From NCBI GenBank assembly GCA_964247055.1, contig OZ176050.1, positions 1,860,001-1,924,000 on the forward strand: a stretch of DNA of 64,000 nucleotides. The letters are read 5' to 3'. This DNA is from Paragordius varius. Lineage: Eukaryota > Animalia > Nematomorpha. Positions 1,790-61,506 of this stretch are shown in pieces (within the stretch, counting starts at the first letter, position 1; each line of letters starts with the position of its first letter). The position numbers and the translations under genes were made by a program. Below the pieces are notes generated by a model. That model was given only the letters and a program-made list of their open reading frames with translations. It ran no database searches and was not told the DNA's origin.

Positions 1790-3684
1790 CACTTCAATTC
1801 AATTTGGGGTATCTAAATACCCCAGATTAAATTTGAATTAATATTTTAAAAAAACTACTGAAGAAAACGGCCCCAATTTAAATTTATGCTTCTATACCAT
1901 TTTTCATGCAAAAACATCATTTTTTCAACCAAATGCAACATTTTTTCAACCAAACTCAACATTTTTTCAAGCAAACGCAACATTTTTTCAAGCAAAGACA
2001 ACATTTTTTCGAGCAAACGCAACATTTTTTCAAGCAAAGACAACAATTTTTCATCCAAACGCAACATTTTTTCAAGCAAACGCAACATTTTTTCAACCAA
2101 ATACAACATTTTTTCATCCAAACGCAACATTTTTTCAACCAACGACAACATTTTTTCAAGCAAAAACAACAATTTTTTTAAAATAAAAAACCATTTTTTT
2201 ATTTTTAGACATATTAATTTTAAAGTTAATGTAAATTAATTTTAGCGTAGAATTATGATTATTATTGTTTTATCATCAATATTTGATGGTATGATTGATT
2301 TTCAAACATTTTAATTGAGCCCATAAATTGCATTATTTATTTGTATTAATTATTTTTTTCTTTTACAACTTTAGTTTTACCTAATCAATCTATACTGCGC
2401 TTCAAGATTGTTCTTTATTTAAAGTTAGCCCTAGTACACTATAAGTTGGTCCTTCAATATTTTAATTTTGATTCTAACGTTTATTAATGTAGAAAATATT
2501 CATTATTCAATCATTTAAACCTATTTTTTTATTTAACCTATACCTTTAAGTGAATACATTTCTTTCATAAGAACCGTATATCCTTATTATTTTCTATAAA
2601 TTAATATTAAAAATATCTACGTGTGGGTTATTAATGGTAATATTTGGTTTAAAACAATAATAAATTTACAATATTGATGAAAAGAAAATTTTAAAACAAA
2701 GTTGTTTTACTATGATAATATTAATTTTGATTCAAAAAATAAATAGAGAAAAAAATAGATAATTACACACAAAAATAACGGTTTATAAAAACTGCAAAAA
2801 ATGTAAGGAATTTTAGGCGAAGGATATCTTTTAATTTTTAAAGAGAGTCTTAAAGCGCAAATTGTATTGATTGATGAAAAAAAATATTTTTAAATAAATA
2901 ATGCAATTTATGGGAATTAAAATGTTTGAAAATCAATCATACCATCAAATATTGATGATAAAACAATAATAATCATAATTCTACGCTAAAATTAATTTAC
3001 ATTAACTTTAAATTTAATATATCTAAAAATATGGTTTTTTATTTTAAAAAAATTGTTGTTTTTGCTTGAAAAAATGTTGTCGTTGGTCGAAAAAATGTTG
3101 CGTTTGGATGAAAAAATGTTGTATTTGGTTGAAAAAATGTTGCGTTTGCATGAAAAAATGTTGCGTTTGGATGAAAAATTGTTGTCTTTGCTTGAAAAAA
3201 TGTTGCGTTTGCTCGAAAAAATGTTGTCTTTGCTTGAAAAAATGTTGCGTTTGCTTGAAAAAATGTTGAGTTTGGTTGAAAAAATGTTGCATTTGGTTGA
3301 AAAAATGATGTTTTTGCATGAAAAATGGTATATCTAAATGAAAATTATATATATGTGCCAAAATATCTTGATAAAATTTTGCTTGGAAAAAAAAGTTCCA
3401 TCTCAAATTACTTCGACGCCATTTTTATTTTACAAAATTTTTGCAAAATATGGTCTTCATTTAATTTTAAGGGTAAAACTAGAGCTAATTTTTTATATAA
3501 ATAACATCTAACATTGATAGAAAACAAAAAAGCGGTTTATTTTGTATTATTTCTTAATTTTAGAATTCGACACATATCACGTTGACCAAATTTTTACCTT
3601 TTGGTTTTAGCTTAAAATAAGTAATATCAAGTATATTTGAATAAATATTTTTATATATTTCGGTTTTTTAATGTTATTTAAGTG
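1790..3684. mobile_element. Family E copy interrupted by the family A foldback
   Basis: TTAA|CACTTC start and AAGTG|TTAA end. The sequence on both sides of 1895-3330 is collinear with 20402-20967. Confidence 0.7.
1895..3330. mobile_element. Foldback element, family A (young copy)
   Basis: Starts TACCATTTTTCATGCAAAAAC and ends GTTTTTGCATGAAAAATGGTA. TA is duplicated at 1893-94 and 3331-32. Each arm has ~13 copies of the 21-bp unit GCAACATTTTTTCAAGCAAAC and the arms are nearly identical. The uninterrupted homologous site (CTTCTATCC) is visible in other family-E copies near 20500 and 63700. Confidence 0.9.
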
Positions 3685-5123
3685 TTAATATCCAACTTTA
3701 GTTGTAAAGGGCTTTTAGTAGTAAAAGAAGGTTGGGATTTTTGTCGTTTCGATTAGGTATATTAAATATATCCCTTTTTACACAATTCTCAAAAGGAATA
3801 TCCAAACATATAAAAGTTTTTATTTATCTGATCCTTACTCAAGCAATATGATATCATAATGGAAATTAATTATTATTCAATCTTTTCCATATTAGAATTT
3901 AGTATATTAGTAACTGGTTGGAAACACTTGTTTGATCGACTGACATAATATATATATATATATATATATATAGTAACCTTCAAACGTAAAAAACCAAATT
4001 AAGATATGAACTAAAATTTAAATAAAGTAAAAATATTTAATGAGATATGAAACTAAAAAACATGTGTGTATTGTTATTAATAAAAAATCGTAATGTTATT
4101 AATATTGTTAAAACCCTTCTTTCTGTTCATTATATTTAGTCCTCTTTTGTTTATTGAAATTTTTAGCGATTTAACATAACATTCGAAATTTTTAAAATTT
4201 TAAATATAGAACCATGTGTGTCATATCATTCAAAAGAGCCGTGAAGGCTATGTTGTGAAGGGGATTGTGGAGTCTTGTGCAGACTGAAACTGTCAAGTAA
4301 TTGATTTTGTTTCACCTTTACTGATACTGAAGAGCGCAAAAAACTGAATTTATCGAATGGTAGTTCATTTAATCAATCTGATGTAAAAGTTATTTGGCTT
4401 ATTTTAAAATTTAAAAATTTTGAACATTAGTTAGTGTAACTAAATATTAAACCGGTATTGAGAATTTATTAGATAAGAAAAATATATTTGGAAAGTTTTA
4501 ATTTAAAAGGTGTTAATAATCTCACGATGTAAATGATAATAATAATTTTGATTATTTTTATATAGTTCATTCATTGGCTTGGGTCCTGGTAATATATTTT
4601 AATATAAGTTTTTTAGTTAATTAATTAAAAATCAATTTCAAATAAATATCTCATTTTTATTGAATATATTTTTGTTCAATTGTGTGATAAAATGAGTTTA
4701 TTTAAAATAACATGCTTGTGTTATCTTTTTAAGACATTCATTGCCATCTATACAAAGTTTGACCCATCCATTAGTTTTTAAATTATATTAATTAAGAAAA
4801 ATATCGAGAGTTTGTCGCTTCCTATATCAAATATTAACTAACGATGGAATATAAAGTATGCATTTTATAGAGTTTTTATTACTCTTTCGAATGATATATT
4901 ACGAATGGGCATCTGTTGCATATTCAATGCAAAAACATTTATAAATAAAATTTGATAAAAATTAAATTCAGGTGCTTTTATTATTATATGAGATTTGCTG
5001 TTAAAATGATTTATCAGAAAAACTCGAGTCGCAAAAAAATTTCTTGTCTAGTGTAATTAATCGTAGTTATACATAATGTTGAAATAATAAAAATGAAAAA
5101 ATTCGTTTTTTTAATATCACTAA

Positions 5124-5773
5124 TTTTTACAAATATATGTTGGTGATGATAATGTTGAATTTGATCCGTTGCAATGACTTTACCAATGTTAAGAGGCCAA
5201 TTATATATGAGTTACAGGGACTATCAGCAAATGACTTGGTGAAGTTGTTTAAAACAGCAAAATATATGATGCCATCTAATACATATATCATGCCGAAAAA
5301 ATTCTTCATGGCGAGCATGGAACCTAAATATAATGCTCCTACAATGGATGAGGTGGCGATGTTATAAATGGAGATCAATTTTATTCAATCAATATATTAA
5401 TTCACCTAGAAAATGGTTTAGAGACTCATAGATGTTATGATCCGTTACATTATCCACTAATATTCTGGATGGTACAGATTGATATATTTTAATTTTAGAT
5501 GATTTATACTATCACTAAAGAAGAAATTAATAAAAAATGTAGCGCAATGAAATATTATTCGTATGTATTAATGTCAGGATATTCATTCATAATTTAAGAT
5601 GCAGACATTTGACCAATACATTGTAGATATGTATGCAATAGAAACAACGTACGTTACATCTTCGGTTAAATCAGGCTAAACTTCGTTGTGTAATACATAC
5701 ACCTACGAGATGCTATAATTAATGAAATATCAACGATATTGGGAGATATAGAATACTACCATCTTCATACAAG
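5124..5773 (+). mobile_element. Helitron RepHel relic
   Basis: Frameshifted Helitron motifs: FLQIY.GD, LVKLFKTA, YNAPT.DEVA, ETHRCYDPLHYPL, SAMKYYSY.LM, QYIVDMYA, LRLNQAKLR, IHLRDAI, LPSSY. Truncated by the family B foldback. Confidence 0.8.
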
Positions 5774-6351
5774 TTGTTCCTTGAACACTTCAAGTTGGTC
5801 CTTTGACTTACTTGTTTTGTTTTTAACTTTTATCAATCAAATCGCAAATAATTCATCTATTTTATTGTATTTAACCTATTTTCTATCATAAATTTTAAAT
5901 CGATATAAGCTTTTAATCTTTGAGAAACCGGATATCGTTATTAATTTCTGAAATAATTTTGGATTCTATGAGATTTTAACATGAAATGAAAAAAAATTAA
6001 ATTTTTTTATTAATTTATAATAAAAACATTTGAAAGTCAATAATTTTGTTCAATTGAAAAAAAAATAGTTTTAAACAAAAAGGATTTTCAATAAAAAATT
6101 TATTTTTAAATGAATAAATATATAATAAATAAAAGAAATTTATGTTAATAAATAATAAAATATAAATATAAATACAAAAATGATTAAATCAATAAATAAA
6201 AAATTTAAGGACAACTTGATGTTTTCAAGGACCAACTTGAAATGTTCAATGACGAACTTGAACTATTCCAACTTGATCTGTCAAGTACCAACTTAAACTG
6301 TTCAATAACCAACTTGAAATGTTATAGGACACTCTTGCAGTGCAAACGGTA
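5771..6351. mobile_element. Family B foldback, left terminus lost
   Basis: B units at 5771-5810 and an inverted array at 6205-6335. Right terminus GCAGTGCAAACGGTA|TA. The core resembles 41760-42180. Confidence 0.75.
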
Positions 6352-7352
6352 TACTTTAAAAATATATAACATACGCATCAACACTCAAAAACTTTGCTCT
6401 TAAAAATAGGATATTGGTTCCCAGTGGACAAAATTATTTTTTATACATTATCCCAGTAAGACTACATCAAAATATACAGATAGGTTGATAATCTCTTTCA
6501 TATCCGATTACAAAGATATTAAAAATTAATGTGTAGCATAAGCAATACTCAAATTAAATTTTGCTCTTAAAAATCGGATATCACTCATAAATAAAATTAT
6601 TTATTATACATTATATTAGTAAGTCTACATCAAAATATACAGATAGTTTAATTAACTCTTTCATATCAGATTTTTACAACGATACTTTAAAAATTAATTT
6701 GCAAACGCATCAATACTCAAATTAAACTTAGCCGGACAAAATTATTTTTTATATATTACTACATCAACATATACAAATATTTTGAAAATCTCTTTCATAT
6801 CCGATTTTTACAAAGATACTTTAAAAATTAATGTGTAGCATAAGCATCAATAGTCAAATTAAACTTTGCGCTTAAAAATGGGATATTATTCCCAAATGGA
6901 CCAAATAATTTTTATACATTCTCTTATAAGACTACATCAAAATATACAGATAGTTTGAATAACTCTTTCATATCAGATTTTTACAACGATACCCTAAAAA
7001 TCAATGCGTAGCATACGCATCAATACTAAAATTAAACTTTGCCCTTAAAAATCGGATATTGATCCCCAATGGACAAAATTATTTTTATACATTCTCTTAG
7101 TTAGACCACCATAAAATATACAGTTGATAATCTTTTTTATATCCAATTTTTACAACGATGCTTTAAAAATTAATGTGTCGCATACGTATCAATACTCAAA
7201 TTAAACTTTACCCTTAAAAATAGGATATTGCTCATAAATGGAAAAATTATTTTTTATACATTACCTTAGTAAGACTACTAAAAATACACAGAGATGATTT
7301 ATCCTTTCATATCCGATTTTTACAAGGATACTTTAAAAATTAATGTGTATAG
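6352..7352. repeat. Tandem satellite, ~170-bp monomer, about 6 copies
   Basis: The motif GATACTTTAAAAATTAATG..GCAT..GCATCAATACTCAAATTAAACTTT recurs near 6350, 6515, 6680, 6815, 6988, 7157 and 7327. One unit is shortened. Confidence 0.85.
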
Positions 7353-12677: not shown

Positions 12678-13056
12678 TACCATTTACAGTTCAAATTCAC
12701 CCTCGAACAATTCAAATTCACCCTTGAACAATTCAAATTCACCCTCGAACAATTTAAATTCACCCTAAAAATAAATTATGTGTATTCGAACTAATATAAT
12801 TCATTATTAATATGATATATATATTTATGGTATAGTTTATTATTTTTTCAGTATTATTTTAATTTAAAACAAAATTTTATTTTTCAAAAAATATATTAAA
12901 ATATAGGTAATTTTTAATCTTAAAAAACATGTTATTTATTTGAGGGTAAATTTGAATTGTTCGAGGGTGAATTTGAATTGTTTAATGGTCAATTTGAATT
13001 GTTTAAGGGTCAATTTGAATAGTTTAGGGGTGAATTTGAACTGTTATTAAAAGGTG
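12678..13056. mobile_element. Foldback element, family D
   Basis: Starts TA|TACCATTTACAGTTCAAATTCACCC. The 21-bp unit AATTCAAATTCACCCTCGAAC occurs about 4 times, with an inverted array at 12940-13045. The right terminus is degenerate. Confidence 0.8.
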
Positions 13057-13305: not shown

Positions 13306-16300
13306 TTAGTAAGCTATAAACTGTGGACCATTTTTTCCGAGGCGAATTAGTATTTGAGTTTCATGAGCATGTATGTTATATTTTTCATCAGTGGCTTGTT
13401 TTTTCTTTCCATCAAACAAATGGGCCGCATATTTAAACAAATTATATAAATTGGTTATTTTTGTTGGACTAATGTTTTTGCGTGTTACAAAGGATCGAAT
13501 GGGAATAGTTCCGAAATTACAACTAAATTAATTTTTTTATTTAATAAAAATATATTTTGATTAAAAGATTTTGTACAAAAAAAATTGAGTTATTCATTAT
13601 TTTAATAAAATAAACTACCTGTTATATTTTGTAATAATTTCATTTCTACCATCCGGGCAAACAAGTTTCAAATTTGTGTTTTTCAAATAATTCTCATCAA
13701 ATGTTGTCAACAAAACACATTTTTTTAAGCATGAAATGTCATTGCACTTAAAAGGAATACTTTTACCGTTTCTATAGCATGAGCCTCCTTTCATATTATT
13801 GATTGAAATCGGCAAATCAGAATCCCATACAGATATATCGATCTTATTATCCAGACAAATGATTGATTCTGCCAACATTAAAATTAAAAATATCTTCAGT
13901 AAGGCCAATTAATCCAATGACTTTGTTACAACAAAAATAATATAGTATACTTAAATACCTTAAAGAACATGTCCGAAGAGGATTTAAAAATAATATATTT
14001 CGATAGTTTAAAGATTTTGTATAATAATGCTTAAAATAATTGGTAAAAATAGAGAAGCATTATATACATAATCCTAATTATAAAAAATAGGAAATCATAA
14101 AGTCTAACGAAATCACATATGAAGCGAGTCAGATAAAATTCGTTTATATGGTTAAATATACCCATAAATTGCGTTGTAAAAATAACCATATTTTCATATA
14201 ATTTTATCGATTTTGTATCATAGGGAAACAAGCTATTTTTTCCATAACGGTAAATAATTATATTATTCAAAAAAGAAAATAATCTATCAGTATATATATA
14301 TATATATATATACTCGGTGTTATAAAATTGCACTATATTTCTGCCATTCAATCCTTTTTTATAAAGCTTAAATTCTTTTTGAACGCAATTTATTGGTTAA
14401 ACTTTTTATTTCTGCCATTTTTAGTTTTACCCACGCACAAAAGCGGTTTTTACACTTCATTAGAGTTTTACTATCACCTTGTGATAAATTGCAAATATTA
14501 AATAACCAGACGAATTCCTAATGTGCAAGAAAAGTGCGACTTTTGGTTATTGACAAAAAAAATTATGATGATTTTTCTTTTAAACTAATTCATATTGAGA
14601 CACGCAATCAAATATTATTTATAAGATTATATGTGCACTGTAAAAATCTGAAACCTGTGTGCAAAATTTTAAATCAACATAAATATAATTGCTACTTATA
14701 AGCTTATATTAGGCTGTTTGCGACAAAAAGAGCTGCGAAATCGAATTATATCAAATTAAATAAAAATATTATTCGCATTTTGCCATTACACAGTGCCAAA
14801 AAAATCCAATCAAATTTATATACATTCTGGCTTGGTCTTAAAAACGTGGTTTTTGGACGATTCTAGGTTGAAAACATGTTATTAACCCGTTAGGCTATGG
14901 ACAAATAAAATATAAACGTTTTAAATAAATCTTAGGCTGAAATTAAATATGGTTGAAATATCATATTATTGTTTCATCTCTAGTACAGAAAGGGTTATCA
15001 AGTTCTACAATATGACACGAAGTTAGTGTATAAAAACTTAATTTAGTTATTTTTGCGAATTTTTGGAATTTATTTCTAAAAAAATGATTTTTGCATTTTA
15101 CTTTAGTCTAATATCGAGGTTCATTATAACACAAGCTTTTTGAATAATTTAACTGTTATCAATTATCAAATAGCCAATTTGAATTATAGAAAATTTTAGA
15201 ACGAATTATCCCAAAAACGTAGAAGTGCTTAAATTTATTTTTTTGAGTTACCTCATTATGCAACTGCTCCCAATTTTTCGGGGCTTGTGGGTTTATTTAA
15301 CCAAAAATAAGAAAAGAAAAAACAAATTTTTGACTCTAAATTCGCCATGTATTTTTTTATACATATATATATATATATACCCTAATATTTCTGTCAAAAA
15401 CAATATTTTTTCGTCCAAACTCAACATTTTTTCAAGCAAAGACAATATTTTAGCACGGGCAACATTTCAAGCAAACGTAACATTTTTTAAGCAAACGCAA
15501 CATTTTTTCAACCAAAGACAACATTTTTTTAAGCAAACACTAGTTTTTAATTTAAAGAGATATTTTATTATTTTATGACAATATTTTATAAGTATTCACT
15601 CAATATGATTAGTTAAATTTTAGCATGAAATGATTTATTGTTATAATATCAACATATAGTAAAATGATTTCTAAACATTTAAATTTTGCCCAAAGCTTGA
15701 TTATATTATTTATTTATATATGCATTTTAATGTATGTTAAGTAATTTTATAGCTAGTCAAATAATTTAGTTTATCAAATGCGTAAAATACTGCTCCACAA
15801 AATCTTTTCGTAGTACACATATGATAGAGGATGGACATGAGAATTAACATAGGCTTTATTTGATGGATATTTTGTAATGTCAAATTATGAGAATGTTATA
15901 GCAATTTATGTTAACATTTGAATTTATTGTTAATACGTATTTAAATGCGGAGTTTTGTGGGTATCTTTAATAAATTATTAAATAGTTAAATAGGTATTTT
16001 AAGATTATTATGATTATTCCTAATTAAATTTAATAATTGATATATCTCAACATAATAAATTGTTGCAATAATTTTTAAGTATTTCAGACATTTAAATGAA
16101 TATATGTAAAAATTGCGGTTTTAATAAATTTAGTCAAATTTAAATTTTTTGTTTTTTTAATTTAACATTTTTAATCGTAATAAAATACTTCATATAAATA
16201 AATACTAGTAAAAATTGCGGTTTTTATGAATTTCAAATTTATTTTTTTTTATTTAACATTGTTAATTGTAATTAATTACTACATATTTTGGATATTAATA

Positions 16301-19300
16301 AATGCAGGAAAAAATTGCGTTTCATATGTGTGCTACGAAATAATTTTGTAAAACAATATTTTAAGCATTTGAAAAACCATTTATGTTATTTGACTGACTA
16401 AAAAATTACTTAACATACATTAAAATGCATACTGTAAATACATTTTTTGAGAGCAACTTTATTTTCAATAAACAATAGATTTTCAAAATTTGAGTTTTTT
16501 ATATTTTACATATAACAAAAACATAACGAGGTTAATTTTTTTAGATAATATTTTTATGGAATTTACTTATAATATTAAAATAATATCTAAAATATATTTG
16601 GAGATAAAAATGAAGTCAATTTAAAAAATAGAACAATTAATTTATGAGCAAAACTACAATGTTCGAAAATCATTCACCATCTAATATTGGTATTAAAACA
16701 ATAAAAACCATAATTCATTGCTAAAAATGATCTAATCATTAATTTAAAAATAGATATTTGATAAAATTAATAAAATAAAAAATGTCTTGAATTTAAAAAT
16801 ATTGCTTTTGCTTGAAAAATATTGTCTTTGGTTAAAAAAATGTTGCGTTTGCTTAAAAATTGTTGTTATAGTATATATATACTTTTAAATGATTTATCTT
16901 TTAATCTGGATGAACAATCAATATTGCTAAACAAAATTACCGTTTAATTGGACGTTTCCGGGTTGGTCTTTATACAGGGCGATTAAATGCTGAGTATCAG
17001 CGTTTTCTTTAAATATCATTTTATGACTAAATATATTAAATTGAAATTTACTTTTCATCCATTAAATCAGTGTTTTGTATTAATGTGAATGTGAATATCT
17101 CGGAGTTTTTGACCTTATTTAGACAATAATCTTCTGTCGCGGCCTCTACACAATATATGCCAGGTTTCAATGCATTTAAGGCAACTGCCTTGGAAAATCG
17201 CTCACATTGTTCAAGTTGTTGTGGTAAAACACACCAAAATACTTGAAGGGGTTCGCATTTTTGTAAGCCTTGCACTACCTCCAAATAATTACCTTTAAAT
17301 TAAATTTAAAAATAACCAAGATATAATTTATAATCCTCTGACGAAGGGCGGATTAATTTTTGTGTCGAATCTTTAAAAAGCAAATTTCCTTTACCGTATT
17401 TCTCAGCACTGTCACCAAACATTTTAAATTCTTTTGAGTTTCTTCCAAACTTCTAAAAATTTAATAATTATTTTATCACTCTATATTTATAAAATATTAG
17501 GCTCTTAAAATATTAAATCAAATTGGTTTAAAAAATCATTATTACAATGTAAGAATCAAATTACCATCGATAATTGATACGAGGTTAGATTTGTTGTTTA
17601 GGCTAAATATACTAAAGACAGAAGGTTATCTATTTAAATCGAAAAATCGCAGTTCATTACATTGAATTGAGTTGAGTTGTTTCTAAGGTCAATTCCTACT
17701 TACTGCACCATTGAATATATAACTTCTCAATTTATTGCGAATACCGGATTTAACGTTAAGTTTGGATAATGATTGGTTGGTATCTTTGAGGATGTTATCC
17801 ATCCAACAATTTCGTTTCTTTCTCTTTTACGACACCCCTCACTTTTCAAGTAAGTTGTTCTCGTAATCAAAAGGATAGTTTTTGCCGTATTAAGCTTCCT
17901 AGTAGTGACATTTCCGGGTTAATTTTATTTAAAATAGTGGCGTTAGAAATTGTCCATTTTATTTGGAAAGTTTCCTATAAACCCATAATTCGAAAGAATT
18001 TATTTGTCGTTCGTCATATTTTTTCAGTGTCCAGCTTTCCTTTCCCCATACAGGAAAGTGGGGAAAACTGTAGCCTTGATTAAGTTTGATGTCATGTGAC
18101 GTCCAAATCTTGTTAAAGTTGAATGTGACTCCCTTAGCGATGGTAATTCTTCGTATTCTTTCTGGAGTAGAGTTGTTGTCATTGCTCATAATGCTGCCCA
18201 AATACGTGTTACTGTTTACTGTTTCAATCTAATTATCGGCGAGGATTATTGAATTAGTTGTTTGAGCCGGGTTGATTTGGATAACTTTTGTTAAGTTCAT
18301 ATTTAATCCGAATTTATTGCATTCAGTTGTGAACACTTGCAAAGCTTGCGATAATGTGTCTACCTTCTCTGCGAATAAGACTGTATCATCCGCGTAATGA
18401 ACGGATGAAATAGGTTTCCACCTAAGCTATGCCATAAGTTTCTGGGATGTTTCCTATTATGCATTCGAGGTATGCGTTAAAAAGAATTGGAATTAGAACA
18501 CATCCTTGGCATAGAGGCCGAGTTGCACCTTACATGAATCAGATATGCGTGAGGTGTAGATACTACAACCATGGAATTTAAGTAAATTGAAAACATGAAG
18601 TTGATTAGATGGGTTAATCCAAGAGGGATGTTTTGCTTTGGAAAAATCAACTAAGCACATGTGCAGTTCTTTGTTAAATTCAATGTGTTTCTCTAGTATC
18701 CACCTCATATTGCATATCATATTTGGCATCATCTACCTTTTTGAAAACCAGACTGAATCGTGAATATCTCGGGGTCAAGAGTGGTATTTAGTCGAAACTA
18801 TATTATTTTTAGGAAAACTTTGGGCACTTTGTTAATGAACGCTATGTTGCGATAGTTGTCGCAAAGTTCTGGATTACCCTTTTTTAAAATAGAAATCATA
18901 ATTGATGTGCACCAATCCTCGGGAATTTTATCATCTTAAATATCTTTGGAATTAATTTGGTAAGTATATCGATTGGGATATATTTTATTATTTTAGTAAG
19001 GGTGTCTCTGTGCCCTCTGATTTGCCTATACTAGAGTATTTTATAGCGTCAACTTTCTTTCATTATAGGTGGGTCTTTCTCTTGAGTAGGTTCGTTGATA
19101 ATATGGGGGTTATTTCTGTTGTATAGTTTATTTATATGTTTAAGCCAGAGTTTGCGGATTTCGTATTTTTCAGTGACGATTGAGTTGTTGTCGTTTCTCA
19201 TAGGTTCCTTTTAAAAAGTTTTTTTATGTGGAATAATATAGTTTGTATGGGAAAAAGGTTTCGGTTATTTTTGGCGTCGATTTCTAATTTTTCACACAGG

Positions 19301-22376: not shown

Positions 22377-25300
22377 TAAAGTCTCTTTTTTGCTTTTTAT
22401 TAATAGGTAAAGAATAGTATCGCCACTAGTAGAACACCCGCCTGCTCAGGGCTGACAGTGATGATGGTAAAATTGCGCAGTTTCGAGATTTGGTAGTTCG
22501 CACACACAGTGTAAGAATCCGTTCCATACCTACTATACTATCACGCCTTCAATTGAAATTGTAAATATAAAATACATTATAGGAGATAAAAAATATTGGT
22601 AATTATTAAAAATTATATTACCAATATTTTTCTCGGGATCTAATGCCAATGGAGCACAACTTTTGGAGAAAAAAGCAGCTGCGGATTTTGCAGGATTATT
22701 GCAATCTTTTACTTCCATTATACCTTTTTCTAATAATGTTCCTATAAAAAAAACAGGAAATTAGTTTTCGAAATTTTTACTAGAAATATTAGCATACCAA
22801 TAGGAATATTCCAGCCCGCTGTTCTCCCCACACCTGTGTGACAAGAACGTAATCCTTTCAAATCTGCCAAAGATTTTATATGACTGTTAGCTTTGACGAT
22901 AGCTACACCCTTGTACTTTGCTTGATTAGTTTTTCCTGTAGGAAAAAAATATTATCTGAGACACAATATTTTGTATAATATTCAAAAGTATTCAGTGTGT
23001 AGTTTAAGTCTTACTAAGAGGATGTAAAAATAATTTTTACTAAGGGTCACCCTTAGATATTCGAGCAACAATTAATTTGAAATGATAAGTATGCTGTTTT
23101 TATACATTTTTTTAGTATCCATGTAAATGGAAAACTATGGAAATCTGAAACTTTAACCATATTTCAGCGAAAGGCAACATATTTATAACCGACCGCAACA
23201 CTTTTTCAACCAAATGCAACATTTTTCAATCAAACGCAACCTTTTTATTAAAGTAAAAACAATATTTTTTCAAGCAAATGCATCATTTTTTCATCCATAC
23301 GCAACTTTGCCTGAAAAATGTTATGTTTGCTTGAAAAAATGTTACGTTTGCTTGAAAAAGTGTTGCTGGTTAAAATATTGCTTATAAACTAAAAATGGTA
23401 TATGTATATACCATTTCCCAATCTAAATAAACGTTTTCCCAGTCAATCGAAACATTTTCCCAATCAATCTAAACGTTTTCCCAGTCAATCGAAACGAGTC
23501 AATCGAAACATTTTCTCAGTCAATCGAAACGTTTTCTCAGTCAATCGAAACATTTTCCCAGTCAATATTTTCCCAATCAATAAAAACGTTTTCCCAGTCA
23601 ATAAAAACGGTTTTATTTTTGATGATAAATATCAAAACAAGACATAAAAATAACTTTTAACCATTATCAGCGTAATATTAGGATATTATTTTTTATAAAA
23701 ACACAATTATTATATGACAATATTAAATATATTCCAGTGCACAATCATTAATGACTTATTCTTTAAAAGTTATATTTTTGGAATTTTAGATGTTTTTAAG
23801 ATAATATTTTTTATTTTATTGATGGTTCGCATTAATATTTGCCGGCTTCAAAACAGTTTTTAAACATTTCAAGTTTTTCCATAGAAATACTGTGGGAAAA
23901 AATATCTAAACAAAAAATTTTTTTCGATAAAAATGTTTTTGATTTCAAAATATTTAAAAAAAAGATATTTGAAAACAGGGTTGTCTAACCAAATAGCTTC
24001 GCGGGCTGCATTGCTCAAAAAGCACGTCGTTCCGTTCGATATATTTCATAAATAATTTTTCGATTAGACATATGACTGTAAAATACAAAAATATAACAAT
24101 TTTTTTTAATTTGTTACCAATTTAACAGACTCATTTATTATAAATGCGTAAGAATATGAATATTACTAAGATTTTGTGATTTTTGCATATGGATTTCTAA
24201 ATTTTTAGCGGGCCGAAGATACTCGGCAGGCGTTGGGCACCCGATGAACCAAATGATAAATATCATAAATTAGGGTAAAATTTATGTTTAAGATTTAATA
24301 TGAGGTGTTAAATGACTTTTGAGATAAAAATGGTATATTTTTATAAATTTTATTATTTCATCCGTAACAATAGATTTTATAATTTAGCCGCAGATATGGA
24401 TGCGAACCATCGATAAAATAAAAAATATTATCTTAAAAACATCTATTCCAAAAATATAACTTTTAAAGATTAAACGTTTAGATTGATTGGGAAAATGTTT
24501 CGATTGACTGGGAAAACGTTTATTTAGACTGGGAAATGGTATATATTTTATTAGCTGGATGAGTATTTGATGGTTTTAGATTTTTTTAAGAAAATCAATA
24601 ATTTATTTATTTTATCAATCGTTTGCATTAATATTCGGGGCTAACCTAAAATATCCAAAGTTTCGGATTGAATTATAAAATTTATATGTATTTTCAACTC
24701 TTTACATTCAAAAAGGAAACCTTTTTCAACTTTGTCCGTGATCGAAATACTGTACGATGAAAAAGTTGATTTTAATGAAAAAATATATTGGATAGAATAC
24801 AAATACACAATATTATGGTACGCAAGTTTATGTTAATTTGAGATGTTTGTATGAAATTTTAATGTTTAAGGGCTAACTGAAACACAAATGGTATTTAATC
24901 TGATTACCTATATACAATGCAGCGATTATAAGGTGTTGTTAACCTTTTCTGTGACTATCTGGTGTGCAATAATTAAAAATATTATACCATAATTTTCTCG
25001 TCTGCTTTTAATTTATTGGATAAAAAGCTTACGTTTATTATTTTGCATACATCAGATTATCGATATAAGGTATTCATTTAATTTGGTAATATTTTAGTAA
25101 TGTCAGAAACAGGAATCAAGAAAAAATTAGTTGTATCTCAACAAGATAGAAAACGATTAGTAAAACGAGTTTTTTTTGATGGAGAATGGACTGTGGATGT
25201 ATCAAAGGATTTTAATATAAACTATAATACTGCTCGTCAAATTATGAATAAATATAAAAAAACAATAGTTCAGAAATTCTAACTCGTGGAGGCACTAAAA

Positions 25301-28300
25301 ACAAAAAAATTACGGAAGATATTATGCATTTCATAGATAATAAACTAACTTATCAGCCGTCATTAACAATTAACCAGTTAAAAAATTTTTTGGAAGATGA
25401 AAAAAAGATAAAATTATCTAAATCCTCTATAGACCGAGTTATCAAATCTTTAAAAATAACTTTGAAGTTAGCCCATCATCTTAATGAAAAAGTCAATGAT
25501 CCTCAAATAATAGATTTAAGGAAAAAATACGCAATATGGTTTTCACAATCTTTCTCCGATGACTTAACAAATATTATTTATTTGGATGAATGCGGTTATA
25601 ATAACCATATTAGAAGAATCCAAGGTCGATCCAAAAGTGTCACGAGAGCCAATATTGTGGTGCCTAGCGTAAAAGGCAGAAACATCACTTTTATTGGAGC
25701 TCTGTCATTAAGAGGTATGGTTTATTACGAAATAGAAAGCCAAAGAACAGTCAATTCCCAACGCTTTACAAGTTTTTTTGATGGACTTTGTGAATATTTA
25801 AAGCGGGACGAAATTCAATATCATTATATTATGGACAATGCACGGATTCATAAAATCAATGAATTAAAAGGTAGAGCCGATTTATACAAATACAAAATTG
25901 ATTTTTTGTCTCCGTACAGTTATATGTTGAACCCAATCGAAATGGCATTTTCAAAAATGAAAAATTTTGTCCGACAAAATATTATATTAAATAATATGAA
26001 TGCGAATGTGGAATTATTGAATCTGATAAAATTGGCAGCGGGCTCCATAACATCGGAAGATAGCAGAAATTATTTTGAAAAGATAATGACAAATATGGTA
26101 AAGGCGGCAGCCGGTTTACCTTATATGTGATCTTTTTATAACATATACAATAAATGAAAATCATTTTTAATAATTTTCCTCAATTTGTCTCTTTAACAAA
26201 ATCAAACAATGATTGATTTATTCAGGTATATTAGTACAGTAATAGTTCAACTTTTTAAAAATAAGTCATTAAAGATTATGTAGTGGAGTATATGGGAAAA
26301 ATTGTCATTCAATAATTGTGTTTTTTTGCAAAATATTATCCTAAAATTACGCTGATAATGGTTAAAAGTTATTTTTGTATCTTGTTTTGATATTTATTAT
26401 CAAAAATAAAACCGTTTTTATTGACTGGGAAAATGTTTTTATTGACTGGGAAAACGTTTCGATTGACTGGGAAAACGTTTCGATTGACGGGGAAAACGTT
26501 TCGATTGATTGGGAAAACGTTTCGATTGACTGGGAAAATGTTTCGATTGACTGGGAAAACGTTTCGAATGATTGGAAAAATGTTTCGATTGACTGGGAAA
26601 ACGTTTATTTAGACTGGGAAATGGTATATTAATTAAGGTTCATAAAAAGAAATAATTTGATCCATCGATGACTGAAATGTTTAATGATAAGTTTGCTGTT
26701 ATTTATATAATTATTTTTTGCCATCATGAAAAAATCGTATGATGAAAATGGAATTATATTTAAATTTAGTTTTACTAATATAAGAAAATTTTTGCCCACC
26801 GCTAACTATGTTTATTATAATTTTTTATCCTTGTAAAAATCGATTAAAATTTTTCAATAAGGCTTAATTTTTTGAACGCGATGTATTAGGTAATCGATAT
26901 ATAACGAAAATCTCAAAAAATCATAAAGACACCCGAAGTCGTAGGGAATGCGATAATTTTGAATTTTGTCATCAAATTAGATGATAAACTTCGCACAACG
27001 GCTTATCCTCAAAATTTGCTCCAATCGATGGAAAATATGGGAAATAGAGAACATGGATTTCAATAATTAAATATTTAATATTTCTTAATTGGAAGATAAC
27101 ACTAGACAACATAGTTGACTTTTTTTAACTGCCATTCTTGCAATTTAAAATTTATATCATTAAAGTACATAAATAATATATCTGAAATAAAATTCGCCCA
27201 ACGCCTAAGATTTTTATTTAATTATGGTTTATTGATTTTTTGGGTCTGATTCAACATTAAACTTGGAATTTTCAAATTCAAAAGTTTTAGATGTGGAGCC
27301 ATGTATTTTATATCATTCGGAGAAACGCAACGAACTGTTTCTTTCGAATGGTAATTGGTTATTTAAATCAATCTGATTTAAAAGTTATTTAGGTTTCTAT
27401 GGGAAAATTTTCCCTTAAATAAGTCAAAAATTTTCACAGACAAACTAATTTAAAAATAATATAAATTATTTTAATATAATTATTAGGTTTAAATTAGTAA
27501 AAAATTGTAAAAAATTCTTTGAAAAGCTTTTTGAATTATTATTACCATAAATGTTTAACCTAGTGTATACTAAAATGCATAGTTACAACTGTTGAATTAT
27601 TACATAATCGTCGAAAAAATAAAAAATACCTTAAACTTGTTTTTAGTCTTTGAAATTAAAAATTATAAGCATTCTAAAAAAATAAATAACCCTGTTCCCC
27701 TGAATTCGATAAAAAAGCCCATATTTTTTAAGGTTATTATAACTTTAAGAGTCCAAAATTAAAATGAGAACCGATTGCAATCTGGATATATTAGAATAAA
27801 AAATATTAATAATTTGGTACTAAAATATAATTTTATAGCTTTTTAAATTCTTTACATTTGTTAAATACCTTTATTTGCATGTTGTATCGGCATTCAAAGA
27901 ATGAATGGAACGAAAAGTTTGACATGAGGATCACAATTTAACTAAAAAAATGGATCAGGCGCTTTAAAACCTTAAGAATGCATATTAACTTACCATTAAA
28001 TATACGTCTTAAGATATTCAAATTTAGGGTATACTACCACAGAATGAAGTATTGGTGGTATTTTAACAGAGAAAGACGAAAAGAATTCGTAGTTTATTAG
28101 TTAAGATTCTTTTTTTAGATAAAATATTATTTATGCAGATATTAATATGGAAAAATTAAAATCGAGGAATATAATAATATATTTATGAAAATTGTGGAGA
28201 AAATACTCTCTACGAAAAAATACATGGCAACATACATGTAAACTAACTACCCTTTTATCCATTTAAAATATAGATTTAGCCTAATAATAGTGATCGCTCG

Positions 28301-36279: not shown

Positions 36280-38900
36280 TTAAATGTTCATTTGAAAAAG
36301 TGCAGATGGACATTGTTTATCATCATTATCATTTTTTTGGTTTAGTACAACTTCTTTGGACAGCTTCTCTTCTTCTAAACTTTTCTCATTGACCTCACAT
36401 CTATACAAAAAACAAGTATAGAAATTTATGAAAAAAACTATAAAAACTTTTTTTAAAATTGTTTAAGGGAATACTTTTTTTCATCCATATCATGAAAAGA
36501 TAGTTGTGGCTGATCATCGGCGGCTATTTTACTAATGTAATTGTAGGGAACCCACCCTTCTCCATAGTCCCCCAAAACCCACATCCATCCATTTGAGCTT
36601 CCTGACCTAACTGGGGGGCGTAAATATTTGTTTATGGTTGTAAAAGCCGATGTATTACCGTTGTCTTTAACGGTGTTTTCTTCGGATGTTAGATCACAAA
36701 CAGATGGTGCTTCTACCATATCACCCCTTCTAACTGTTAAATCATTAATATCTCTTGCAATAAAGTCATACAACACGATGTAGCGGTTTAATTTTGATTT
36801 TTTGGTCGGAATACTGCTATCGATAATTTATAAAAAATATATATAGAGAAAATATATTTGATTTAAACAACGAATCCAATAATACCTTGTATCATCCTTC
36901 ACCATGTTTAATATTTCATTACGTTTTAACCACGAATTGAGGGGTTCTACATGCTTAGGTATGGGAGGTGGGTCCGTATCTAAACAGGTGCTTCTATCAG
37001 GGATAAATTTTCTGGGCTTGCTGGGGGAGGTGGGTTTTGATTTAGAAACATTGCTGAAAGTTATTCCTGATTCGCTGGAAGTTAAGTGTTTAGACGAAAT
37101 AAATAACTTGTGAATGGGACTAAAAATGTGGTATTTCCATTTTTTGACATTTTTCTGGTCTAATTTAGTACCGTTGGTGCCGCTTAAATCAATATCATTT
37201 AAACTTTTGCTTTTTCGGACGTTTGATTTATTTAGAGTTTTTGAAAGCCATGCAAAAGGATTTACTAATTGCATTTTAGCACCAGTTTTTTTTAAGGTGC
37301 GCTCTTTTTTAACATCTTTAACTGTTTTCTTCTTTATTGGCTTAAATGGCTTTGAATTAGTGTCCGCGCATGTAGATTCAATTCTAGGAGGTTTTAAGTT
37401 AGAAAAACACTTATTATCCATTATTTTATAACTTTTATGCAAAGGTGATGCTCTTGATGAAAACAGCTCACATCTTGAATTAGAATTTTTACTTATGTTT
37501 TCGTTTTTTCTATTATCTTCATAATCGTCCGGATTATTGTAAATACTTGAATATTCTGCTTCTTCCATCCAGTTGTCCAAGTTTTTCATTTTCGCAATAT
37601 CATTATTATTTACTCCATTTTTAAAGGAGTCAAAAATACAAAGAGTATTTATTTGCCCCTCTTGACAATCCTTTATAATAGGAGCATATTTTTTGTTTTT
37701 TCCTTGCATTTTATTTCTTTGACCTTCTTTATTTATTGCTTTGCCCTTTCGAGTAAAAAATTTAGCAAGAAGAGTTTGCTTCGCTAGTCTTTTTGCATTT
37801 TCGTTAGTGGTTTTGCTAAAAGAGATTTCTCCTGTCCTAAATTCCTTATTTAAATTATGGTTTACATTTTTACCGTAAATCACATCAGGATTAATAATTT
37901 GCTCTTGACTCAAATATACCGATGATTTGCCAAATCTCGGTCTGGTTAGCTCATAAAACATGTGATGGCATCGACAAGTTCTATTTCCATGATGATTATA
38001 ATGAAGCTTAGTTGCTCGTATTTTTCCCAATTTGTGGTTCTTTCGTTGACCTGATCCGTGGGCAAATCGCTTTTTATTATGGACCATATTTGAGCTAGTA
38101 CACATATGGTCTTCGAAATTTTCTTCATCGTCGGAGTAACATAACCCATTTTTTATATCATTTGTTGGAAGTGTGGAATGCGCTGTATGATGAGATAAAT
38201 TATCTGGAGGTTTAGCATATTCATACTCATTTTCATATCGTGTCGAATTGTTGCTAACAAAGTCTGTTTTAAAAAAAAATTTCTCCTGCTTTTTTGGCAA
38301 AACATTATTCTCATTTAAATGTTCATCAGACATAGAGCGTTCTTCTTGACTGTTATTATTTAAATTTGATCCACCGCAACCAATTCCACTGTCCAAATCA
38401 TCCATCATTTGAATATTAGATTTCTTAATTGAATCAAACATTTCTTCGGCATGCTGTTCTTCTATATCATCGAATAAGTATTCGGATGAAGATTGTTCAA
38501 AACACAAATTATAATCAAAATTTGTAATAAATCTACAATTTTCCATGGGAACAAAACCTTGCTTTTTCAGTGGGGTAACGATGTACAATAAATTATCCTG
38601 TTTAAACAGTGCATAAACCAAATCTCCTCTGTTTAATTGTACAAATGTATTTGTTTCATTTGTGTCTGATGAGTCCAAAAGCATGCTAACTTCGGATTGT
38701 TTTATAATTTTTAGAGGCACCTTAGCTGGTGAATTCATGTTAGATTTCTCTAAAAGTTGTAAGAGGGATCTGACAAAATTAAGAATTTCGTCATCAATAT
38801 TAAAGTCCCTCTGAATTTCTCCATTTTGATCGTTGTTACTTTGTTTTTTATTTTTTGGGTAAAGATTATTTGCCATCGATTCGTAAATTTCACTTTCCAT
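36280..38900 (-). CDS. Two-SH3-domain adaptor protein (SH3 domains resemble Dlish/Vamana type), ~825 aa
   Basis: Exons 36886-38900, 36475-36816 and 36280-36400 join in frame via GT-AG introns (69 and 74 nt). N-terminal SH3-like segment LNRGDLVYALFKQDNLLYIVTPLKKQGFVPMENC. C-terminal SH3 RYIVLYDFIARDINDLTVRRGDMV...GWMWV...EGWVPYNYI. A long low-complexity N/K/S-rich linker lies between them. The Dlish resemblance is from recalled motifs, not a search. Confidence 0.8.
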
Positions 38901-40318: not shown

Positions 40319-41634
40319 TACCATTTTTCATGCAAAAACATCATTTTTTTAACCAAATGCAACATTTTTTCAACCAAACGCAACATTTTTTCAAGCAAAT
40401 GCAACATTTTTGTAAGCAAACACAACATTTTTTCAAGCAAACGCAACATTTTTGCAAGCAAAGACAACAATTTTTCAAGCGAACGCAACATTTTTTCAAG
40501 CAAACGCAACATTTTTTCAACCATAATAGACAACATTTTTTCATCCAAACGCAACATTTTTTCAACCAAAGACAACATTTTTTCAAGCAAAAACAACAAT
40601 TTTTTTGCCCCAATTTTTTTATATTATGACAAATTCATTTAATTTTAAGTTAATGATTAGTTAAATTTTAGCTTTGAATTATGATATTTATTCTTTTATT
40701 ATAAATGGTAAAATGATTAAACATTTTAATTTTGCCCTTAATTTAATTATTTTATATATTGTATACCATTTGCACTTTAAGAGTGTCCTACACTTCAAGT
40801 TGGTCCTTGAACATTTCAAGTTGGTCCTTAAAATTTTTAGATTTATTTTTATATTTCTTTATTATTTTTTAACCTAATTTTCTTTATTTATAATATATTT
40901 ATTCAGATAAAAATAAAAAATTTATTCAAAAACCACTTTTTTGTCTCTAACTAATTTTTTTTCAATTTAACAAAAATTATTAACTTTTAATGGATTTAAA
41001 TGAAAAATTGTAAATTGTATATTTTTGAATTTCGTGTTAAATTCTTTATAAAAAAATTAATATAGATCTACGGTTTCTGAATGAATAGGTGATTGATTTC
41101 AAAATTATGCTAAATAGTAGAAAATAGGTTAAAAACGATAAAATAGATGAATGATATCCAATTTGTTTGAAAAAGTTAAAAACAAAACAAAAAAGTCAAA
41201 GGACCAACTTGAATTGTTATAGGGAAACTTTAAATGTTCAAGGACCAACTTGAAGTGTTCAAGGACTCTCTTGAAGTGCAAATGGTATGCCAACATATAT
41301 TGATGTTAAAACAATAAAAATCATAATTCTACGTTTTAATAGGTCTTAAATTAAAAAAATGGTTTTTTATTTTAAAATTGTTGTTTTTGCTTAAAAAAAT
41401 GTTGTCTTTGGTTGAAAAAATGTTGCGTTTGGATGAAAAAATGTTGTTTTTGGTTGAAAAAATGTTGCGTTTGCTTAAAAAAATGTTGCGTTTGGTTGAA
41501 TAATTGTTGTATTTGCTTGAAAAAATGTTGTCTTTGCTTGAAAAAATGTTGCGTTTGCTTAAAAAAATGTTGCGTTTGGTTGAAAAAATGTTGCATTTGG
41601 TTGAAAAAATGATGTTTTTGCATGAAAAATGGAA
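40319..41634. mobile_element. Foldback element, family A, with a nested family-B element
   Basis: Same termini and 21-bp arrays as 1895-3330. The core contains a B element at 40764-41287 (TACCATTTGCAC...GTGCAAATGGTA). Confidence 0.88.
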
Positions 41635-41650
41635 TATATATATATATATA

Positions 41651-42359
41651 TACCATTTACACTTCAAGAGTGTCCTTGAACAATTCAAGTTGGTCCTTGA
41701 ACAGTTTAAGTTGGTCCTTGAACAATTCAAGTTGGTCCTTGAACAGTTCAAGTTGGTCCTTTAACTTTTTTTTTGTTTTTAACTTTTATCAATCAAATCG
41801 AAAATAATTCGTCTATTTTATCGTTTTTAACCTTTTTTCTATTATATTTACCATAAATTTTAAATCGATATCAACTTTTAATCTTTGAAAAACCGTATAT
41901 CTTTATTAATTTCTTAAAATAAATTTAGATATTTATAAGATTTTAACACGAAATGAAAAAATATATAAGTTTTCTGGGTTATTAATTAAAATTTTTCATT
42001 AAAAACATTTAAAAGTCAATAATTTTGTTCAATTGAAAAAAAATAGTTTTAAGAAAAAAAATTGGTTTTTCAATAAAAAAATTTATTTTTAAATGAATAA
42101 ATATATAATAAATAAAGAAAATTAGGTTAATAAATAATTACTTAAAAAAATAAATGCAAAAATTATGGTTAAATCAAAATTTATAAATTTTAAGGACCAA
42201 CTTGAACTGTTCAAAGACCAACTTGAACTGTTCAAGGACCAACTTGAATTGTTCAAGGACCAACTTGAATTCAAGGACCAACTTGAACTGTTCAAGGACC
42301 AACTTGAATTGTTCAAGGACCAACTTGAATTGTTCAAGGACACTCTTGAAGTGTAAATG
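41651..42359. mobile_element. Foldback element, family B
   Basis: Starts TACCATTTACACTTCAAGAGTGTCCTTGAAC and ends GTTCAAGGACACTCTTGAAGTGTAAATG. The 21-bp unit is AATTCAAGTTGGTCCTTGAAC. The right end is fused directly to a family C terminus. Confidence 0.88.
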
Positions 42360-43470
42360 TACCATTTTCCAGTAAAAAAACGTTTTCCCAGTCAATCGAA
42401 ACATTTTTCCAGTCAATCGAAACGTTTTCCCAGTCAAAAAAACGTTTTCATAATCAATGAAAAACGTATTTCCACTCCAGAAAAACGTTTTCCCAGTCAA
42501 TAAAAACGGTTTTATTTTTCATAAAAAATATCAAAACAAAATTTAAAAATATGTAACCATTATCAGCGTAATATTAAATATTATAATTTGTAAAAACATA
42601 ATTATTATGACAATATGTCCTATTAAATTCCAATCACGATCATTAATTACATAAAGGTTATATTTTATGGAATTTTAGTATTTTTAAGAAAATAATTAAA
42701 ATTTTATTTTTCTATCGATGGCAAGCCTGGGCTAACTTATAAAATGTATAGTTACTGGTCAAATAATAAAACTTTTAAAAATAGACCATTTCTATCTGAA
42801 ATCGGCCATCGCCTTAAATGGATTTTAAACGTGTCAAGTTTGTCAATAATATTGGGGAATAATATATCTAAACAAAAAATTTTTTGATAATGTTTTGGAT
42901 TAAATATTTAATAAAAAGGATATTACAACACAAATGGCTTCGCGGGCCGCATTTTTAACTCAAAAAGCACGGCGTTCCGCTTTCGAAATATATGCGGGCA
43001 TTCATAGATAATTTATTCGATTTTATACATAAGACTGTAAAATGCAACACAATATAACAATTGTTTTCAAGTTCGTTGCCAAATAGACTTATTTAGGAAA
43101 ATTGCGTAAGAAATATCAATTTTACTAAGATTTTATGGGCATATTTGTGCATATATATATCCAAATTTTTCGCGGGCCGCAGAACATCACAGGTCCGCGT
43201 GTTGACCCCCGGACTAAAAAATAAATATATTAGATAAATTATGGTAAAGTTGAGATGTTTAAAATCCACTTTGAAGCGTTAAAAAACCAATTTGAGATAA
43301 AAATGGTATATTTTTAAAAATTTTATTATTTCACCAATAACTATAGATTTTATAAGTTAGCCAGAATAGGCTTGTCATTGCTAGAATAAAAAATTAAATA
43401 TATTCTTCAAAATACTCAAATTCCATAAAATATAACCTTTAGAATAAGTTATTTATGATTGTGATTGGAA
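42360..43470. mobile_element. Family C foldback, right terminus lost, hAT-MITE-like core
   Basis: Starts TACCATTTTCCAGT with C-type 21-bp units. 42630-42760 is inverted at 43310-43470. The core 42925-43212 matches 23976-24243. Confidence 0.75.
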
Positions 43471-43753
43471 TATAAGTGGAAAAAATTTCTTTTAACAAGT
43501 AAATTTTTTAAAACACAAAACAAAAATACATTAAGAAAAATATGAAAAAAAATTTATAAAATATTTACAGAAGATTTTCAAGCGGTCATATTTCGAAATT
43601 TCGCGGAAAGCTGACGGCGGTCAACCGTTTGGCCACCACTGATATATATAGAAAAAATTGTACAAAATATTTTCGATTCCACAATTAATTAGTCATAGAG
43701 TAAAACGTCTTTGCGTATTTTGTACGGTGTAATTTTTTATTTTTATATAAATA

Positions 43754-44867
43754 TACCATATTTCATGCAAAAACATCATTTTTTCAAACAAAGACAGCAT
43801 TTTTTTAAGCAAAAACGAAAATTTTTTAAAAATTTTATACCATTTTTTTTTATTTTATGACATATTAAATTTATAGTTAATGTAATTTAATTTTAGCCTA
43901 GAATTATGATTTTTATTGATTTATCATCAATATTTGATTATATGATTGAATTCAAACATTTGTAACTTTGCCCATAAATTGAATTATTTTATAATATTTT
44001 TTTCTTTTAAAACATTTTCGCTCAATCAATAAATATAATTTCCGGTTCAATTTTTGTTGGTCTTAGAACACTTCAAGTTGGTCCTTCAATATTATTTTGA
44101 TAACTTCTATTAATTAAGCAATATAATATACTTTTAAGTGTGTATCATTTCTTTCTTAACTGTATATTATAAAATATTTAGCTATATTAAAAATATCTAG
44201 GTTTTATATATTATTGATCGTAATATTTAGTGTAAAACATTAATAAGTTTAAAATATTGATAAATAAAAGAAAATTAATTCGAAACAAAAGTTATTTTTA
44301 CTAAATAATATTTTTGATTCAAAAACTACAAATAAATTAAGATAATAGTTTAAATTTAAAAAAAAGAAAATTTACAAAAATAGCGGTTGTATGCAAACTG
44401 CAAAAATGTAAGGAACTTTAAATGAAGGATAACTTTTTTCAAATACACTCTCGAAGCGCAAATTGTATATATTAATTTGGTTAAACTAAAGTTGTAAAGG
44501 AAAAAATTAATTTATATAAATAAATAATGCAATTTAAGGCCAAAATTAAAATCTTTTAAAATCAATCATACCATCAAATATTGATGATGAATCAATAAAA
44601 ATTATAACTCAACGCTAAAATTTTATTAATTAAATTAAAGTTATATAAATTAATAATTAAATTGTCATAAATAAAAAAATTCTGTTAATTTAAAAAATTT
44701 GTTGTTTTTGCTGAAAAAATGTTGTCTTTTGTTAAAAAAATTGCGTTTGGAAGAAAAAATGTTGTCTTTGGTTAAAAAAATGTTGCGTTTGGTGCAAAAA
44801 ATGTTGTCTTAGGTTAAAAAATGTTGCGCTTTGTGGAAAAAATGATGTTTTTGCATGAAATATGGTA
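43754..44867. mobile_element. Foldback element, family A variant
   Basis: Termini TACCATATTTCATGC and GCATGAAATATGGTA with TA flanks. The left array is short and the right array longer. The core has a degenerate B relic. Confidence 0.82.
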
Positions 44868-60829: not shown

Positions 60830-61506
60830 TTAAGGGCTCGTTAATATATTAGGATACATTATGTAATATGGAACTTAATATAAGTTTTGTGATTCGTTCT
60901 GAACTTAAACGAATTTCGTTACCAAGTATAGGAAATCGGGTCTTCATTCGACCGAAAACCCGCGCTCGATAATGCTTCTTTCAGAACAATGTAATTTATT
61001 GAATTTTTTCCGTTATCGATCATCGTATTTTTGAAGGGGGTTAGGAGCGAGGGTGATAGTGGATATCCATTATCACCCAACAAAAAAAAATCTTTGCACA
61101 TATATGACTGAACAATCGTGTTTCGCCATATCCTTGAATCATGCACAGATCCTGGCCATTGTGCATCCACGGATGTAATTTCTTTATTGGCATTACATGT
61201 AAATTGTACATTGAGGGTACATCGACCCTTTCGATTTATATAGGCCTCAACATTTTCTTTAGGTCTTAATATTTCAAAGTATGAACAATCAATACAACCA
61301 ATAGTAGTTGGCATTTTATATTTGGATAGCCATAATTTATTCGCCATATTAAGCTCTTCAAATGACTTGGGAATTTTTACCCAATGAGATTTTGATACTA
61401 TTTCGTCCATAACCTTAGGTATAGTTTTGCATATTGTGGAACTATGAACATTAAAATCATGTCCTATACCCGCTAGATATCCCGGATCTCCAAGAAATCT
61501 TAACAC
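60830..61506 (-). pseudogene. Harbinger (HARBI1-like, DDE_Tnp_4) transposase, frameshifted near the C-terminus
   Basis: Motifs IGCIDCS, YINRKG, LNVQ.TC, VDAQWPGSVHDSRIW, LLGDNGYPL. After a shift: ERSIIER..GRMKTRFPIL...LHN. Confidence 0.88.

Follow-up and report, generated by a model that had tools for sequence, protein, structure and literature searches.

The interval at positions 40319-44867 of the 64,000-nucleotide stretch of Paragordius varius DNA that was analysed (the window) is a real chain of non-autonomous TIR elements in eukaryotic DNA of 25% G+C. The chain runs from an A-type element with a B-type element inside it, across a TA run, to a free B and a one-ended C that holds an E-type element, and closes with a second A. 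The initial annotation had assigned four families to this interval; A, B and C are present in it, but D lies outside, at 12678 to about 13055. The ends confirmed in the interval are 40319, 41634, 43754 and 44867 for A, 40764, 41287 and 41651 for B, and 42360 for C. The features of the chain are followed here by the copies found elsewhere in the window.

40319-41634, unstranded: A-type non-autonomous element of 1316 bp with TA on both sides; arms at 40323-40605 and 41350-41630, each with about 13 units and about 150 bp of unique arm
40764-41287, unstranded: B1, a B-type element nested in A, with 2-4 units per arm and 80% identity to the free B
41635-41650, unstranded: TA run separating A and B, a target site
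41651-42359, unstranded: free B-type element of 709 bp, with 5 units on the left and 8 on the right
42360-43480 (end approximate), unstranded: C-type element, left array at 42364-42513
42782-43308, unstranded: E-type element that belongs to the same superfamily and lies precisely at the midpoint of the C palindrome, units decayed
43754-44867, unstranded: second A-type element of 1114 bp with TA flanks and ends TACCATAT, 3 units on the left and about 8 on the right
44034-44467, unstranded: B2, a decayed B-type element inside the second A, about 55% identical to B1
1895-3330, unstranded: A-type copy with arms 96% identical, sitting in another repeat and containing B2 at 2393-2866
12678-13055 (end approximate), unstranded: D-type element with 4 units on the left and 5 on the right, right terminus decayed
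23409-26626, unstranded: C-type composite of a left arm, an internal short right end at 24541, a transposase gene and a right arm with 10 units
25100-26130, plus strand: DD34E transposase gene (Pfam DDE_3) inside the C-type composite

The arms of the window elements are about 370-450 bp long. The free B has lost 5 bp of its right terminus (42359) at a palindromic junction with C. The C element at 42360 in turn retains an array on the left side alone; the right arm is present and ends near 43480, short of its array. Two further TACCATTT ends, designated F and E, lie at 24893 and 24335 with different and decayed units, which brings the end types in the window to at least six. Elements tend to chain at TA runs, and a small foldback of A-like units without a spacer (23156-23400) is arranged tail-to-head with the C element at 23409, 8 bp away. 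The window also contains a tandem array (6379-7349) whose periods are about 173 and 307 bp, a host gene on the minus strand with a 690-residue exon-sized ORF (36453-38900) and a weak SH3 match just downstream, and a fragment of a PIF/Harbinger-type transposase (Pfam DDE_Tnp_4), also on the minus strand (60919-61506).

The long A and C palindromes carry inner elements at or near their centres (42782-43308, 23850-24335, 2393-2866, 44034-44467 and 15721-16429). Three different inner elements are found among the A copies, two different B-type ones sit in separate A copies, and B2 at 44034-44467 shares 74% identity with the interior of the A copy at 1895-3330. The E-type element itself bears a further insert with CGCGGGCCGC motifs (23980-24245 and about 42940-43210), the ends of which we take to resemble those of hAT MITEs. 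In C, and in the A that contains B2, the mirror symmetry of the arms continues to the very edge of the inner element. This layout could arise by insertion of small elements into the TA at the middle of a palindrome, or by repair in which one of the flanks is copied around the inverted ends of the element inside, a process that has been proposed for long-TIR MITEs (PMC3814204).

TA followed by TACCATTT has 12 exact matches in the 64 kb, 11 of which are at element ends. The 8-bp terminus is common to the families, as the initial annotation had noted, but it is not exact in every copy: it reads TACCATAT at 43754 and 44867 and TTCCATTT at 41634, and is shortened at 42359. The target site can be read from one insertion, the A copy at 1895-3330, for which the window holds three empty paralogous sites (about 20500, 29330 and 63717) with a single TA. 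The empty sites read TTC-TA-TCC, and the filled site has a TA outside TACC on the left and a TA outside GGTA on the right. All three paralogues thus agree on a TA duplication and on element tips of the form TACC...GGTA, which upholds the proposed placement of the ends at TA, and most other element ends are likewise flanked by TA. The same empty sites rule out an end consisting of TA plus CCATTT as well as a TATA duplication of the piggyBac type. The tip varies among relatives of these elements (TACC, TAGC, TAGG and CAG), implying that the terminal TA of the element occupies the place of CA in Tc1 elements.

Tandem Repeats Finder reports a period of 21 with scores of 121-346 for the main arrays, far above chance. 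This bears out the 21-bp period for the arrays of A, B and C, but not its exactness, as single copies break it with steps of 18, 24, 35, 36, 40 and 41. The number of units ranges from 2 to 13, and the left and right arms of a single copy can differ in it. The conserved terminus and the first unit overlap, and units cut in register from base 5 were compared for A-D and 13 loci from outside the window (17 units in all). These share the degenerate consensus TTTTnCAnnTCAAnTTnAACA. Its information content is 15.5 bits at the first unit and 13.7 bits at the second, whereas 5000 random rotations averaged 3.1 bits and never exceeded 5.5. The units had been described as different repeat sequences; the in-register consensus shows that they are not unrelated but diverged copies of one probable paired-like-domain binding site. 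B and D match at 15-16 of the 21 positions, as their visible relationship had suggested, but A and C, thought to be much less alike, also match at 13-15, and A and B at 5-8. By sequence comparison, the units of A-D fall into two related pairs, all variants of a single diverged motif. They have no dyad symmetry, with at most 10 of 21 positions self-complementary (the B row, out of register, was set aside). Tc1-mariner enzymes bind at the terminus, and a paired domain spans about 20 bp; the units are accordingly putative transposase-binding sites.

The transposase encoded by the C-type composite has the DD34E spacing and matches Pfam DDE_3 with an E-value of 1.6e-14. Its gene is interrupted by a single frameshift near 25270, in the stretch that joins the first helix-turn-helix to the GG linker; the frameshift was read through with X for domain comparison. 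Family C alone has a transposase gene in the 64-kb window; none was found there for A, B or D. Full-length homologues that are 33-44% identical occur in microsporidia, in a Strongyloides record and in many metagenomes. A PAX N-terminal domain is detected in 16 of 27 members of the clade, Pax paired domains and Sleeping Beauty being sequence relatives, and the best solved relative by sequence is Pax6 (E 1.4e-7). The match to Pax paired domains includes the GGS linker as well as the two subdomains. For an intact relative, a confidently predicted structure comprises six N-terminal helices arranged as two three-helix units together with a catalytic core, and its best fold match is Mos1. In a FastTree phylogeny of 138 proteins, built with no outgroup and no named reference elements, the window transposase falls into a supported subclade of 44 members within a larger DD34E radiation. 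This separate subclade, with a support of 99, has a motif of 11 residues, which like DNARIH is one of its catalytic motifs.

Long arms with internal tandem repeats are reminiscent of Foldback, and the only transposase gene at hand (25100-26130) is located within a composite, as would be expected if the DD34E gene were a passenger in classical Foldback (Mutator-like) or Galileo (P-like) elements. In Galileo, the long tandem-repeat arms contain several sites for transposase binding (PMC3688188). Nevertheless, Foldback, Galileo and Mutator-like elements belong to other superfamilies, with duplications of 7-9 bp and other DNA-binding domains, and the duplication here is the 2-bp TA rather than 7 or 9 bp. 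Simple elements consisting of an arm, a DD34E gene and a second arm occur moreover in many other genomes. Membership in either group is refuted by these two observations, and the passenger scenario is highly improbable.

The end design recurs outside the window. An intact gene in Enteropsectra breve has TA, TACCATTT and 21-bp arrays of yet another unit on its flanks. The 3' part of the element in this species (4654-6885 of the locus) is duplicated, leaving one left and two right ends, as in the composite at 23409-26626. A period of 21 lies beside related transposase genes at about 20 loci from microsporidia, Marteilia and metagenomes, and a period of 22 bp in two. Among the outside loci that have TACCATTT ends, eight of nine have a period of 21 and the ninth a period of 22, so that the periods are not arbitrary. 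The transposases flanked by the same end and period are DD34E enzymes only 28-59% identical to each other, which supports the earlier suggestion that a conserved end and a phased array are tied to the transposase. At least six different transposases (29-59% identical) come from a single soil metagenome sample, and every one of them is accompanied by a separate unit. Marteilia, in the outer radiation, combines a TAGG tip with a long 21-bp array, and three other relatives there have weak arrays or none, for example only two dispersed pairs of units; arrays are therefore not required throughout the wider group. An element neighbouring the examined locus in Cucumispora (5327-5499) has an array that alternates between 20 and 21 bp. 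No 21-bp arrays were found in 80 bacterial IS630 loci.

Taken together, A-D are likely to be MITE-like, foldback-shaped non-autonomous derivatives of one eukaryotic IS630-Tc1-mariner DD34E lineage. The defining features of that superfamily are present in the form of the TA duplication, a DDE_3 DD34E transposase (direct for C only), a two-part helix-turn-helix domain and TIRs. The assignment of A, B and D to the lineage rests on the shared end and the in-register unit and is to that extent provisional, and the fact that the sole transposase of the window is frameshifted and inside a composite counts against the proposal. It is proposed that the transposase would cut at the conserved TACC tip and paste the element into TA, and that the 21-bp unit, which begins at base 5 and overlaps the terminus, would be the binding site of the two-part domain. 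The inner units would be head-to-tail copies of this terminal site that recruit more transposase, and the four families would carry diverged versions of a single ancestral unit, every version passed down together with the transposase subfamily that belongs to it. The elements would be mechanistically ordinary cut-and-paste transposons; their end design is unusual and widely conserved. Selection may act on the spacing of two helical turns, as the scarcity of length changes across deep divergences suggests; the best argument for it is that the length remains fixed at a mean unit identity of 49%.

The inner arrays could be explained differently if only the outermost unit matters, in which case the inner units would be by-products of slippage or unequal exchange and the period would be the length of the ancestral site. 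The variation in unit number from 2 to 13, also between the arms of one copy, fits such an origin, as do relatives with one or no extra unit and symmetric junctions which give the impression of a genome prone to extending inverted repeats. Neutral and independent duplications should, however, vary in period and phase, both of which are kept across transposases that are about 30% identical, and the inner units retain the consensus almost as strongly as the outermost (13.7 bits versus 15.5). An origin of the inner units as by-products is unlikely.

A further question is whether the unit of each family is recognised by that family's transposase alone, as in the family-specific key-and-lock system of the initial annotation. 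In its strict form this scheme has both the units and the recognition helices of the transposases diverging under selection against cross-mobilisation, and same-face phasing needed for a cooperative transposase filament or synapse. A period that stays at 21 in about 20 loci as the units diverge, and the soil metagenome sample with a separate unit for each transposase, are in line with such specificity. Among the 13 elements that have both gene and unit, similarity of the units correlates with that of the DNA-binding domains (r 0.28, p 0.012), but the catalytic domain correlates equally well (r 0.285, p 0.012), which is the pattern expected of shared descent. Partial correlation detects no co-evolution beyond shared descent in these 13 elements (partial Mantel r 0.17, p 0.10, not significant), a test of low power that neither shows nor excludes specificity. 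The two relatives that use 22 bp also stand against the scheme, and the number of positions shared by A and C and by B and D makes cross-binding plausible. The strict form is possible but doubtful. It is rather unlikely that the principle extends to a pan-eukaryotic lineage in which the paired-like domain and the 21-bp site of each family form a pair that is orthogonal to those of the other families, with the sites arrayed on one helix face for cooperative assembly of the transposase; if true, nature would offer a library of hundreds of such protein-site pairs for the Pax-like fold.

The preferred reading, a lineage of IS630-Tc1-mariner elements, places the families in a known superfamily next to HvSm and not in an undescribed kind of system, as had been envisaged. 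ISY100 is a TA-ended bacterial member of the IS630 family, and the bacterial elements share the DDE_3 domain, with best bacterial matches that are 25-33% identical; viral and bacterial collections yielded only distant IS630 matches. Tc1 elements share DD34E and the TA duplication. The IR/DR ends of Sleeping Beauty likewise have long TIRs in which the transposase-binding site is repeated, with two copies at each end, whereas the window elements have up to 13 abutting putative sites and a tip of TA, not CA. The Tc1 motifs QDNDPKH and SPDLNPIE are replaced here by DNARIH and the 11-residue motif, so that the group does not qualify as Tc1 by motif. Gambol (DD34E), Hiker (DD35E) and Dici (DD34E) are IS630-related eukaryotic elements with a TA duplication and a paired domain (PMC7386202, PMC13469147). 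Dici differs in its TIRs of 8 or 33 bp, which start with CAG, and in having three genes.

The closest described group is HvSm, a comparison made by eye only as far as its sequences are concerned. HvSm has DD34E and a TA duplication, and its description by Dupeyron et al. (2020) gives four sequences with TIRs of 15-56 bp and reports no arrays (PMC7325037). The DD34E triad and the TA duplication are common to HvSm and the window elements. The published Hydra HvSm copies, read by eye, show FIDEVGF, LDNVRFH and FLPPYSPFLNPIE motifs typical of the group adjoining the window's clade, and thus fit the outer radiation rather than the subclade of the window transposase. The published TIRs are also far shorter than the arms in the window. 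One Hydra HvSm copy nonetheless has five units, also identified by eye, at an exact spacing of 21 bp (positions 9, 30, 51, 72 and 93), an array that goes unremarked in the original description (PMC7325037). The published HvSm copies seem to have been truncated within an array, and the ends of HvSm-like elements are probably annotated too short. A literature search, with subscription papers and Repbase outside its scope, returned no description of 21-bp arrayed TIRs in IS630-Tc1-mariner.

These observations tie abundant foldback-looking repeats to a defined clade of DD34E transposases. As the enzyme of each element lies between numerous copies of its probable binding site, the clade yields many matched protein-site pairs, which would be useful for studying how specificity changes in paired-like domains. 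The N-terminal domain of the group deserves inclusion in studies of how the paired domain arose from transposases, and the clade offers a direct test of whether the helical phasing of end repeats matters in the superfamily.
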